Shown here piece after piece: positions 368 to 31,993 of a stretch of 32,000 bases of DNA. Within the stretch, counting starts at the first letter, position 1. Every line of letters begins with the position of its first letter. Position numbers and translations under genes: made by a program. The notes beneath the pieces were generated by a model, which worked only from the letters and a program-made list of their open reading frames with translations, was not told the DNA's origin and ran no database searches. This DNA is from Zygophlyctis sp. KS116 (taxonomy: Eukaryota > Fungi > Chytridiomycota): positions 1 through 32,000 of the forward strand of contig BAAFSQ010000012.1 of assembly GCA_054661495.1 (NCBI GenBank). Direction: 5' to 3'.

Positions 368-849
368 ATGCCTCGATTCTCTCCATACAAATCAATAAAC
401 TCAAATAGATCTAATCTATATAAAAATCTCGTTAATCAATGGAAATCAGTAAACCCGTCTACTCCATTTTCTACATATGTACAGAGTCTAGAACTAGAAG
501 ATCCATTGTCCCTTGAAGAAATTTTAGAAATTGAAAAGTGTCTATTAAAGATTTGTATACTTTGTAAAAACGGGACGTTATCATCCAACAATGGCCACAT
601 ATCTTGCGATTCCTGTATTCTCACCGTTATGTTGGCTGTATTCTAATTCGTATGTATTTTAATTCGTAGACTCCAATAGAGGAATGGATTGATGGGCTGT
701 TGAGCGTTGAAAAAAGTCATCGTCTTGCATGTCCAGGTATGATACGATCAGTTTAAATTTTAGGTGATTTCTCATATGATTATGACCCAAAGGAGTATGC
801 GTTATATAGACATTGTACTGTTTGTGAGAGAATAGATCAGATTGATTAA
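368..849 (+). CDS. RPA-interacting protein (RIP/RPAIN)-like Zn-finger protein, 2 introns (638-669, 737-763)
   Basis: Spliced product has N-terminal YK..W, an acidic EILEIE segment, then CILC..ISCDSC and, after splicing, H..C and C..C. This is the layout of the RPA_interact C-terminal Zn finger. Stop TAA 847-849. Confidence 0.65.
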
Positions 850-893
850 GTTATTTTATAGAGGAAAATTTGGTTTTTGAGAAATTTATTCCA

Positions 894-2480
894 ATGAATC
901 CTGAAAATCAAGTAGAAGAAGAATGGGGATCATTGACAGAAGAAGATGAAGAGGATGAAGAGGATTACAATCCAGGTAAAATCGGTTTGCTGATCATTAG
1001 GTGGATATCATCCTGTGCAGCTGGGAGATTTGTTTTGTGGCACCAAGTATATTGTTCTTGGGAAATTGGGCTGGGGACACTTTTCTACAGTCTGGTTAGC
1101 AAAGGAGAATCTTACCGGAAAGGCCGTTGCTCTAAAAATTGTAAAATCAGCTCAGCATTATACTGATACCGCTTATGATGAAATAAAATTGCTCAATAGA
1201 GTAGTCAATGCTGGAAACTCTCCTTTTAAAAATTATGTCGTACAGCTTTGTGATACTTTCGAACATTTGGGGCCTCATGGAGCTCGTAAGTTATAATGAT
1301 GTATTAATATGTAGATGTCTGTATGGCATTTGAAGTTTTGGGTCCAAATTTGCTAACTGTGATACGTCAATATCGGCATAAAGGTCTTCCAATACTTGTT
1401 GTCCAGAGAATAATCAAACAGGTATTGATGGGTTTAGATTATTTACATGGAAGTTGTGGGATCATTCACACAGATTTGAAACCAGAGGTAAATTTTAACT
1501 TGGTAAATGGATAGAATGTGCTTTTAACAGTTAATGTAGAGCAAGTTTTACAAAATATGGGGCTTGCAGAATTATTTAATCCTTCACTAGAAATTGGTTA
1601 TGTACAAGAGAAAATTAAATCACATGCTCCAGTCAAATCACAGTTAAAAAGAGAAGAGAAGGTTGTTCTGATGGAGAAATCTAGATCTTTACTTGAAAAT
1701 GGATCTACTGGAGCTATATCTAATGATTCTTCAGGTCAGTCTCAAGAAGATGTCTTGGGAAGAACTTTGAGTGATATATCATTAGATAAGGAAAAAACAT
1801 CAAAAGACTTGGAAAATCAAGATATTTTAGAGGAATCAAGGTCTTCAAGTAAATTTCCAGTGCCTAATTTACCTCCTGATTACTCTAATATCCAAGTTAA
1901 AATTGCTGATTTAGGGAATGCATGCTGGGTTGATCACCATTTCACAAGTGATATTCAAACTCGGCAGTACAGATCTCCAGAAGTTATTTTGGGTGCTAAA
2001 TATAATTCTTCTGCTGATATCTGGTCATTAGGATGTATGACTTTTGAATTATTAACGGGTGATTATCTATTTGAACCGAAATCTGGAAAGAAATATCGAA
2101 AAGACGATGGTAGATTTCATAACTTGTTAATATTTAGATCACATTGCACAAATGATGGAGTTGTTGGGAGGATTTCCTAGACATTTAGCACTCTCTGGGA
2201 AATATTCTTCCGAAATCTTTAATCGAAAAGGTAAATCAATTATTTTTTATGCTCAGGAGAACTAAGAAGAATCAATAAGCTCAAGTTTTGGTCTTTACAT
2301 GATGTTTTGATGGAAAAATATCAGCATTCACCTGAAGATGCTCGAGCCATATCTGATTTTATCCTTCCAATGATTGATATTAATCCCGATCGAAGGTAGT
2401 CCAAAATTATTTAACTAACGATTAGAGCCACTGCCTCTCAGATGCTAAGAAACGATTGGATTAGAGACCTTGTTTTATGA
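894..2480 (+). CDS. SKY1: SR protein kinase (SRPK/Sky1/Dsk1), 6 introns (976-1000, 1286-1314, 1488-1514, 2110-2137, 2231-2256, 2396-2425)
   Basis: Splicing restores [43 protein letters not shown], a spacer insert, [20 protein letters not shown] and DDDHIAQ. Confidence 0.96.
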
Positions 2481-2546
2481 TAAAATCATTAAATGCATTA
2501 AGATTAATTGTTTGTTTTAAATTTTACGTCATTGTTGATTTTGAAA

Positions 2547-28664: not shown

Positions 28665-29589
28665 ATGTCCAATAATGCTCTATTAAAAGCTATTCAAAAG
28701 GGTGCTAGATTAAAAAAAGCTGAAACAAATGACAGATCTTCTCCTATAATAGAAAGTATATATATTTTTTAATCGTAGCAAAACCCGGAAGTGCTTCAAC
28801 TGTTCGTACAGCAGCTAAATTGTCTCCTTCAGCGATTAGACCTCCGAATAAATCTTCTCCTTCAATGGCTAGAACTGATGGACTATTTGCAGGAGGTATA
28901 CCGAAACTGAAGAAGAGAGGTAATTTGTCTTTAAAATTAACTAGAGATGATCCAGGAATCAGTGATGATAAACACATTTCTCCAAAATCTACCTCTCCAA
29001 ATTTGACAAGGAAAACGGTAATTTCTAAGTTGCCTTATTTTAGATGTCACCTCCTTCTCGTAGAGCAAGTAATGTCTCTTCTAATCCTCCAGCACCGCCT
29101 CCGCCTCCTCAATCATTTGCTTCTAATTCAGCTCCACCTCCACCTCTAGCACCACCTCTAGTACCACCACCAGCATCTAGAGGAAATGCACCTCCTCCAC
29201 CAGCTGCAAGGAGCAATGCGCCTCCACCTCCAGCATCAAGAGGGAATGTACCACCACCCCCAGTACCAAGAACTAATGCACCACCACCTCCAGTACCAAG
29301 ATCAAAACCAGCATCTCCACCAGCTCCACCAGCTCCTAGATCAAAACCAGCATCCCCGCCTGTTGTTAGACCTGTAGTGCCCAAACCATTATCTCCTGGA
29401 TTTTCCCCATCTGGATCTCCAATTCTTTCAAAGAAACCTACAGCTGCTAAATCAGGAAACGAAACAGAAGGTCGTTTTACTTTTAAACTTCAAACACCTT
29501 GTATAAGATTATTTCCATCTGGAGAATATCAGAATGAAAATCTTCCAAAAGTCAGGGCGCAGCCGCCACCTCCTCCAGTGCGTAGATAA
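28665..29589 (+). CDS. VRP1: Verprolin/WIP-like WH2, proline-rich actin regulator; introns 28756-28778 and 29018-29043 (28920-28946 uncertain)
   Basis: NALLKAIQKGARLKKAETNDRSSP (WH2), GLFAGGIPKLKK, poly-Pro repeats and EGRFTF near the C-terminus. Confidence 0.88.
29161..29360 (+). repeat. Coding tandem repeat with about 30-nt period (PPPP[A/V]xRxN[A/V]) in verprolin
   Basis: Repeated ccaccwccagyaycwaga..aatgca units. Confidence 0.8.
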
Positions 29590-29654
29590 TAATACTAGAT
29601 TGATTGCAATGAGTAATATATTATCCAATGATTTTTCTTTGGCTCGATTGAATA

Positions 29655-31295
29655 ATGATGGCTCTTTCCAAAGATCTTTTACGGCAAAAAATGTGAGTTT
29701 TTAGACTGTTGCTATTTAGCACTACTGCTCAGCATACTAGAGAATTTACTCTATTGGCTAATGCAGCGAATTTATAATGAAATAATTAACTTTTTAGAGT
29801 TTGCCTATAGCTTCGGTGATGAAAACGGAGCTGCGTGAACCAACACGATTCCTTTTGATTGTGGCACCTCAGATTTCAGCCTTGAAGGATATTGTAATTA
29901 TGGATTTCTAATCTTTAGCGATTTCCTGAAAGTCTTGCATTTCATCGGAACGTTTCCAAAGAGACTTGGCTGTTGGCTTTTTTCAACTTGGCAGATGCAT
30001 CGGATATAGCTGGGCAGCTATCAATTAAACTGAAATCTGTTAGATTTGTAGATAGTGATTTTGTTTTTTCTATTTTGGATACTTTAGCGCCTTCTTGGAT
30101 CTCTAATAATGAAGGCTGGGTAGCGATATCTGGAATGCAATCAGGAAGTTGTCAAAAGATAATGGTAAACAGCTTTACAATATTAAAAAATAGAATCTTA
30201 TTTTGCCTTTTGGGGCTACTAGATCCATTTACCAATCAGGGAAATTATGGTTTGTAGAATTCTTTGATCTACGAGATGCTGCTTCTACTGTTGAAAATCT
30301 TAATGGAACCGTTTTGCCAGTACTTTTTATTCTATTAATACTAGGGAAATGTAGTTTTGAATATGAGATTACACTTGACTAATGGGAAGAAGTGGGCGCA
30401 GCAACAAAACTCTTCAAAGAATTTACGTGCTCTTGTTGATATCTCAAATTTCCAGACCAAAAATTCAAATGTTTCTAAATTTGACAAGGTATGGCAGCCT
30501 ATAGGATCATCCTGGAAAACAGCTCAGAACTTGAAGATTGATGAGTCTATTTTGAAAAATGACTGGACATCAAAGAATAGATTAACAGGCAGATTTCTTG
30601 AGCCACAAATTCAAAACTATACAAAAGAGGATAAAGAAAACGTCTTTGTTAAATCTGTCGAAAAATCCTTGAATGATTGGGAAGGTTCCCTTGATAGCAT
30701 GATTATCAGTGAAGGAGGTCGTATTCAATCAAATGAGATTGACTTTGGATTGATTGGTAAATTACAAATTATAACTTATCTCTGTAGCATCTGGAAAGGA
30801 TTTAAGAAGTACATTTATGATTCGAAATATCCCAAACAAGTATACACAGCAAATGTTACTTGATTTTTTGAATGAAACTCACCGTGTAATTACTTTGAAC
30901 TAAAATCTTAGGGAACTTTTGATTTTCTTTATCTAAGAATGGACTTTAAAAACAAATGTAATGTTGGCTATGCATTTATAAATGTATTTCTTATTAAAAT
31001 AGTTAAAAAATAGTTTGCAAATCCAAAATCCATTTTATCTCTTGCTGATCGTATTCTTGGAAAAAAATGGAATCAATTTAATTCTGAAAAAGTTGCAACA
31101 CTTTGTTATGCAAATGTTCAAGGACGGGATTCTTTAATTCAAAAATTCCGTAATTCAAGTGTTATGTTGGAGGATTCTAGCTTTAGACCTAAATTGTTTT
31201 ATACTGTTGGCGATCGTGCTGGATCAGAAGAATCATTTCCTATTGGTCCAACTAAACTTAAATCAAAGTCTGATGTTTTATTTCGCCGTGAATAA
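29655..31295 (+). CDS. mei2: Mei2-like RRM protein; firm introns 29894-29918, 30165-30193, 30320-30344, 30757-30787, 30886-30911, 30984-31013; 5' exons and start uncertain (29655 or 29818)
   Basis: EPTRFLLI (RRM1), [10 protein letters not shown] (RRM2) and RRM3 [58 protein letters not shown]. Confidence 0.9.
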
Positions 31296-31993
31296 TCTCT
31301 TAAAGTTTCTTTTTAAATCTAAATACCATTTGAATAGTTTAGATTTCCAATTTTTATGAGCCAATAGTTCCATATTATGACATAGATTATGCACTATACA
31401 TTTTAAAACAGCTTGAACGATTTCAGCTTGATCCGATTCAATTTGGCTTGGCGGAACATGTATAAATAGTGCAGGAACACCGGTTTTCTGACACTGATAG
31501 AGAGCTTTGAAATATACAAATTCACAAAGATATAATCCAGCATCATGAGATATTTCAACTGCATCCAACCAGCCATTGAACTTTAAACATGCAATTAAAC
31601 AGTCTAATGTAAATCAACCATAAATACCAAGATCAATATCAGTTGTAATAGATGATTCTCCTAATCCAGCAATACATTCGTTCCCTGGAGGGAGCAATCC
31701 TCTTTCATCAGACTCTAAAAGTACCTTGTATCCGGCTTTAAATAACTTTTATTATGTGCCAAGGCCTCTAATCGCAAAGGACCATCATGTCCGACACCGA
31801 CATGAATAATCATATCCAAGTCTTTAGGATACTTCAACTCCAAAATACTCTCGTACTCTACCTCTAGCAAGAGTTTTGTAATTTCCCAACCAGGAACAGG
31901 ATCTATTCTCTTGACAGCCTCCCAGGAAGGATTAATGGAATAGTGCTTAAATGGACCATAACCGGTTATCAATAATCTTTTCTTTGGGATCAT
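31278..31993 (-). CDS. Pyroglutamyl-peptidase I (C15), 2 introns (31702-31724, 31604-31627)
   Basis: LITGYGPF..NPSW, IHVGV, RLEALAHN, SHDAGLYLCEFVY and LFIHVP (Glu-Cys-His triad). Confidence 0.93.

Follow-up and report, generated by a model that had tools for sequence, protein, structure and literature searches.

Ultra-short introns in the intron-rich chytrid Zygophlyctis sp. KS116 and their longer counterparts in sister genomes

Structurally, how a spliceosome copes with introns of less than about 30 nt is an open question; the known cases are ciliates, reduced parasites and nucleomorphs. The first 32,000 nt of contig 12 of the assembly of Zygophlyctis sp. KS116 (G000 in locus names; 12.7 Mb in 1175 contigs), hereafter the window, raise this question for a chytrid fungus: are the very short segments that interrupt its genes introns, and how did they become so short? 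A first-pass annotation, made from the letters alone, had counted 68 introns in 20 genes, all of 23–33 nt. Our own recount gives the same figures, with two introns of 23 nt, three of 24, 10 of 25, 11 each of 26, 27 and 28, seven of 29, five each of 30 and 31, two of 32 and one of 33. The tally combines 64 ab initio calls with four in-frame introns that were added by eye and are confirmed by relatives. Two further ab initio calls, of 34 and 23 nt, were too weak to keep. The five shortest introns that the annotation had cited (23 nt at 28756–28778 and 31702–31724; 24 nt at 5755–5778, 9965–9988 and 31604–31627) have GT..AG ends at exactly these coordinates.

The same band dominates a sample of 232 kb taken from 11 contigs and spot loci, about 2% of the genome. 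Without any annotation, the spacing from GTA to TAG has its sole peak at 24–28 nt (z of 4–7 at 25–28) and is flat over 36–200 nt, although long introns spread thinly over many lengths would escape the test; an excess at spacings of 10–11 is a pattern-overlap artefact. A self-trained gene finder, its intron length prior fixed as log-uniform over 12–800 nt in the first pass, placed 376 of 447 introns at 23–33 nt. Once the finder had been retrained with a prior that left 10% to other lengths, 487 of 504 introns in 129 genes were 22–36 nt long, with a median of 27 nt; the finder accepts GT/GC..AG termini only, and introns with other termini would escape it. Density was 3.8 introns per gene, or 2.5 per kb of coding sequence. 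Many introns with a median below 30 nt define an ultra-short-intron genome, and the membership of KS116 in this known class is real and well supported.

The annotation's claim that every intron is tiny holds for the window only, because a few percent of the introns predicted elsewhere (~2–4%, all outside the window) are longer, at 37–130 nt or more. Predictions of 44, 52, 82 and 83 nt carry good donor and branch signals, and others resemble gene-joining artefacts. Three of them, at L028:3865-3947 (83 nt), L018:7788-7869 (82 nt) and L014:1033-1084 (52 nt), include two with stronger GTAAGT/GTATGT donors and could possibly host small RNAs; Rfam gave no match in six loci holding longer introns, and folding of five of the longer introns showed nothing unusual (z of −1.1 to +1.7). 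Among introns whose length is a multiple of three, 14 are free of stop codons and 116 contain one. This count cannot show selection against stop-free introns, as these are just the introns that ab initio prediction overlooks, four of them in the window.

Evidence that the segments are introns comes from four relatives, L001–L004, whose contigs were found by a search with the ChaC exon and match the window in gene content and order; over window positions 360–20424, the order of 14 genes is fully kept in all four, L003 included. L004 (96.5% nucleotide identity) has 33 of 33 resolved introns. The more distant L001 (~73%) has 26 of 30, at 24–31 nt, the other four being precisely absent, and L002 has 19 of 21, at 24–32 nt. 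In L001, L002 and L004, orthologous introns keep their GT/GC..AG ends while their interiors have diverged. Most length changes (15 of 23 in L001 and 9 of 12 in L002) are not multiples of three, which would be intolerable in coding sequence. Fimbrins of named chytrids, aligned to the window, break at the predicted fimbrin junctions. Run ERR15302231 contains an EF2 contig of a further relative (88% nucleotide identity). It begins 15 nt upstream of the ATG and extends 29 nt past the stop codon, and precisely the two introns of the KS116 gene, of 30 and 28 nt, are missing from it; its shape suggests a spliced transcript, the run type being unconfirmed. Two introns of the window (8573–8603 and 10396–10427) are present in KS116 and L004 and precisely absent from L001, L002 and L003, and are candidates for recent gains of introns that were already tiny.

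L003 shows the same introns at another length. Fifteen resolved orthologous introns measure 52–74 nt there (median 56 nt) and 24–30 nt in KS116; the remaining sites were scored as absent (nine) or were not resolved (14). The introns and spacers of L003 are about twice as long as those of KS116, and its GC content of 47% is 11 points higher, that of the window being ~36%. Similarly, an EF2 sister sequence, L045 (GC 50%), has introns of 79 and 70 nt; where the 70-nt one lies, KS116 has its 28-nt intron. Both L003 and L045 are sisters of KS116 in trees (support 99–100). Three of the window's fimbrin intron positions are also introns in Lobulomyces, where they are 51–63 nt long, and in deposited outgroup genes, introns measure 45–63 nt in Lobulomyces, 73–88 nt in Phlyctochytrium and 112–200 nt in Polyrhizophydium. 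The shrinkage probably took place within the KS116 clade, because the sister genomes have introns of 52–79 nt at mostly the same positions; on the simplest reading of these sequences, all introns were halved on the branch leading to KS116, L001, L002 and L004.

The introns themselves look conventional apart from their size. Of 487 donors, 484 are GT and three GC; A occupies position +3 in 92% and G position +5 in only 24%, giving a consensus GTA(A/T)(T), or GTAWTT-like. The interior is 78% AT with almost no polypyrimidine tract, and acceptors are TAG (68%), AAG (22%) or CAG (9%). A weak branch motif, YTRAY, is enriched 3- to 7-fold solely where its A lies 7–9 nt from the 3′ end (50, 74 and 32 occurrences at −7, −8 and −9, against ~11 expected at each), and the distance from the 5′ end to this A has a median of 20 nt, mostly 16–24. 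Intron phases are distributed 213:147:127. The U1 small nuclear RNA (snRNA) keeps its canonical 5′ ACUUACCU, U2 has an intact GUAGUA branch-pairing site, and the cores of U5 (loop 1) and U6 (ACAGAGA, AGC) are canonical. SF1, SF3B1 and Snu114 are present, the Snu114 gene itself having ten predicted introns of 26–32 nt. Judged by the match of donor to U1 and of branch motif to the U2 site, the segments appear to be U2-type introns. The minor, U12-type class was rejected: the donors are GTAWTT-like and not RTATCCTT, and U6atac was not found in a search made without a positive control on a fragmented assembly. Likewise, the snRNAs and proteins listed, the many introns and the ordinary gene set rule out the reduced-spliceosome type known from parasites.

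In the KS116 U6 gene (L034, G000:C436:156-268), the internal stem-loop is varied, and an additional UUCG hairpin directly precedes the 3′ U-tract. The genes for U5, U1 and U2 occur as tandem copies (G000:C456, C51, C548 and C912), and contig C912 extends between two half U2 genes.

We consider it likely that these are genuine U2-type introns in a 23–33-nt band, removed by a conventional spliceosome, which shrank after the split from L003 and L045 and separately from those of the Gorgonomyces-Terramyces-Kappamyces clade of Rhizophydiales, whose introns are 19–32 nt long. The spliceosome would define each intron as one unit (intron definition), with U1 pairing with the donor and U2 with a branch site that follows after ~20 nt; the lariat loop would measure ~16–24 nt, and the AG 7–9 nt past the branch would be used. 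Genome streamlining and deletion bias may have cut ancestral introns of ~55 nt down to a steric floor, where a loop of ~16 nt plus a tail of 7 nt would match the observed minimum of 23–24 nt. Deletion bias meeting a functional floor has been proposed for mikrocytids (PMC10245619) and would fit here.

Several points weigh against this account. Splicing and branch point are read from genomic DNA and not from KS116 RNA reads, the intron-free EF2 contig is a relative's and comes from a run of unconfirmed type, and the introns sampled cover ~2% of the genome. Deletion bias and the steric floor are conjectural. The placement of KS116 rests on quick two-gene trees, and a constraint joining it to the tiny-intron Rhizophydiales is not rejected by approximately unbiased (AU) tests (P = 0.138 and 0.136).

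A change in the machinery might instead have come first, factors near the active site having been lost or trimmed in a way that permits or enforces short introns; the first-pass annotation had argued for a spliceosome adapted to very short substrates. Intron lengths are indeed sharply bounded both below and above, and loss or trimming of Cwc25/Isy1 has been conjectured as a precedent in Stentor (PMC9505925). Searches for RED_N, as for U6atac, came back empty in KS116, but both searches lacked a positive control and were made on a fragmented assembly. The canonical snRNA cores and the presence of SF3B1, SF1 and Snu114 speak against the idea, as do the few longer introns: because these predictions have good signals, long substrates are probably still spliced. 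Such a machine is hypothetical, nothing in the KS116 data showing one, and we regard it as rather unlikely to have led the change, though it can coexist with shrinkage under a conventional spliceosome.

Whether the shortening is the lineage's own depends on the trees, which were built on single exons (fimbrin exon 1, an EF2 exon, and a quick tree of both combined). Fimbrin groups KS116 with L002 and L003 (support 99) in Chytridiomycetes, weakly near Chytridiales. In the EF2 tree it joins three environmental sequences (99), and this group is the sister of Rhizophydiales (95). In the combined tree it branches deeply on its own, outside Rhizophydiales, Spizellomycetales and Rhizophlyctidales. None of the three contains a close named genome, and 5.8S rRNA was not found in the assembly. 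On these sequences, KS116 belongs to Chytridiomycetes, nested among the chytrid orders, and the annotation's picture of a chytrid-like, intron-rich genome is borne out. On all three best trees, a clade of Batrachochytrium, Gorgonomyces and Kappamyces (94–99) excludes KS116, but the constrained tree is not rejected.

A single origin is conceivable: a common ancestor of KS116 and the Gorgonomyces-Terramyces-Kappamyces clade would already have had tiny introns, and the long-intron relatives would have re-expanded theirs; the unrejected AU constraint allows this, and EF2 alone places KS116 beside Rhizophydiales. Such a history would require genome-wide re-expansion in L003 and L045 and, on the best trees, again in the Batrachochytrium-Polyrhizophydium group (Polyrhizophydium introns are 68–200 nt long), and it sits poorly with L003 lengths resembling those of the outgroup Lobulomyces; we find it improbable. 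The best trees imply two origins, because the tiny-intron Rhizophydiales form their own clade beside the long-intron Batrachochytrium group. The tiny introns of KS116 are probably of independent origin within chytrids. The balance tilts slightly towards the broader claim of at least two chytrid origins, one of a ~26-nt band in the KS116 lineage and one of 19–32-nt introns in cultured Rhizophydiales, both in intron-rich, unreduced genomes with apparently standard snRNAs and both undescribed. The independent evolution put forward in the first-pass annotation is supported in so far as the shrinkage looks lineage-specific; as a separate origin it is less secure, the joint clade not being rejected.

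The metagenomic look of the assembly lends some colour to the idea of an artefact, in which assembly errors, frameshifts or retained in-frame inserts pass for introns. This is largely refuted and highly improbable, given that independent assemblies of four relatives have GT..AG segments with unrelated interiors at the same codon positions, most segments contain stops or break the frame, and other chytrids have longer canonical introns at the same sites.

The annotation had named microsporidia as the one fungal precedent, which does not hold. We inspected ~22 kb from each of several cultured Rhizophydiales, whose deposited proteins were spliced exactly onto their own genes. The fimbrin introns of Boothiomyces sp. 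JEL0866 are 19–20 nt long except for one of 52 nt, and in neighbouring genes, 14 of 16 predicted introns are 19–21 nt; those of Kappamyces sp. JEL0829 fimbrin are 24–32 nt. In Gorgonomyces haynaldii (GCA_025526955.1, L042), the deposited EF2 gene has two introns of 19 nt each, and 14 of the 20 predicted in neighbouring genes are exactly 19 nt, near the nucleomorph extreme yet in a cultured fungus. As in KS116, these chytrid GT-AG introns keep to a narrow band of tiny lengths. Gorgonomyces and Boothiomyces have even shorter ones, apparently at lower density in the samples, and all three species lie on a different branch of the best trees. The tiny introns of KS116 are thus not unique among fungi: cultured chytrids match or undercut them. 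Rozella allomycis, an intron-rich early fungus (2.5 introns per kb; PMC8476143) that lies outside Chytridiomycota, is reported to have introns of ~30 nt in at least one gene, S23, which has two (PMC6349667). The passages found of the same survey, covering 644 fungal genomes (PMC8476143), mention no such short extreme. A literature search returned no description of tiny chytrid introns, which is weak evidence as most subscription papers lay outside it; the ultra-short introns of KS116 and Rhizophydiales alike are apparently undescribed.

Outside fungi, Paramecium and Nyctotherus have introns of ~25 nt (PMC5014332) that, like those of KS116, are many, AT-rich, weakly signalled and handled by the major spliceosome; KS116 differs from these ciliates in its standard code, its 22% AAG acceptors and its syntenic long-intron sisters. 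Myxobolid myxozoans and Dicyema have median introns of 22–27 nt; they share with KS116 a donor cut to GTa, an A-rich branch near the AG, a conserved U2 and a longer-intron sister group, and the KS116 median of 27 nt is that of Henneguya, but they are reduced animal parasites (PMC13644364). That study, of 2026, names only ciliates, Microsporidia and Dicyemida among previous exceptions, with no mention of chytrids. Mikrocytids, with introns of 16–17 nt (PMC10245619), microsporidia and Stentor, with introns of 15–16 nt (PMC9505925), shorter than those of KS116, share the extreme shortening to a narrow band. Microsporidia and mikrocytids, however, have few introns, stronger consensus signals and reduced spliceosomes, whereas KS116 retains U1, with degenerate signals and 3.8 introns per gene.

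The case is less singular than the annotation held, and it is valuable for its pairing of long-intron with short-intron sisters: syntenic genes in which the same introns are 52–74 nt long in one genome and 24–33 nt in the other form a before-and-after pair. Because genes, order and introns are the same at the two lengths, any change in the proteins of the spliceosome can be assigned to a single branch. The cultured chytrids at 19–21 nt are experimental material, and reaching down to 19 nt they extend a natural series for minimum intron length; if chytrid introns did shrink twice, sister genomes and a culturable 19-nt species would together make the lower size limit testable in a fungus. Gene finders and aligners with a default minimum intron size will fragment such genomes, as the broken gene calls in L001–L004 suggest.

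The window's genes are as follows. On the forward strand, a small Cys-rich gene (368–849; introns 638–669, 32 nt, and 737–763, 27 nt, both kept in L001 and L004) has no Pfam match and is conserved in relatives. It ends 44 nt upstream of the start of an SRPK-like kinase and was ruled out as the N-terminus of that kinase, since its own stop ends it in relatives. The kinase (894–2480, forward) has introns 976–1000, 1286–1314, 1488–1514, 2110–2137, 2231–2256 and 2396–2425, orthologous L003 introns being 59, 55 and 64 nt. A TBC RabGAP (2547–4596, forward; 3190–3214, the in-frame 3580–3609, 3727–3754 and 3835–3863) precedes a Rabenosyn/Vac1-like gene on the reverse strand (4614–6410; 5080–5110, 5182–5210, 5263–5292, 5452–5484, 5549–5577, 5755–5778 and 5922–5946), which holds both a 24-nt intron (5755–5778) and the window's longest, of 33 nt (5452–5484). 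An RNase T-family exonuclease (6412–7008, reverse; 6566–6592) and a DUF2039 gene (7184–7778, forward; 7302–7326 and 7520–7546) follow. A gene without an assigned name (7812–8449, reverse; 7987–8012, 8225–8252 and 8317–8342) contains a GC-AG intron, 8225–8252, whose GCAAGT donor is kept in L001, L002 and L004, L003 having a 56-nt GT intron there.

The reverse strand then carries a thiolase (8531–9798; 8573–8603, 9078–9102 and 9247–9273), ChaC (9864–10525; 9965–9988, 24 nt, and 10396–10427) and a cNMP-binding protein (10537–12779; 11285–11311, 11710–11736 and 11802–11827). Fimbrin (12879–14847, forward) has introns 13743–13773, 14140–14167, 14625–14653 and 14761–14787. Next come an alpha/beta-hydrolase-like gene (14855–16151, reverse; 15433–15458 and 15683–15708), TCF25/Rqc1 (16180–18140, forward; 16739–16765, 17151–17178 and 17712–17739) and an SNF2/STH1 remodeller (18166–22191, reverse; 18593–18619 and 20347–20372, both kept in L002, then 21586–21613 and 22102–22128). 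Two forward-strand genes have introns predicted ab initio only: an amidohydrolase (22333–25165), its model uncertain at the 3′ end, with eight of 25–31 nt from 22900–22929 to 24759–24786, and another gene without an assigned name (25886–26969; 26480–26504, 26683–26710 and 26906–26934). The last four are a DEAD-box helicase (26973–28605, reverse; 27734–27761), a proline-rich, verprolin-like gene named by inspection (28665–29589, forward; 28756–28778, 23 nt, and 29018–29043), a Mei2-like RRM gene (29819–31273, forward) with six introns of 25–31 nt from 29894–29918 to 30984–31013, and a pyroglutamyl-peptidase-like gene (31278–31993, reverse; 31604–31627, 24 nt, and 31702–31724, 23 nt). KS116 DNA is ~85% coding with short spacers. 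In the 232-kb sample, convergent genes are often just 2–20 nt apart (median 36 nt), implying overlapping 3′ untranslated regions.

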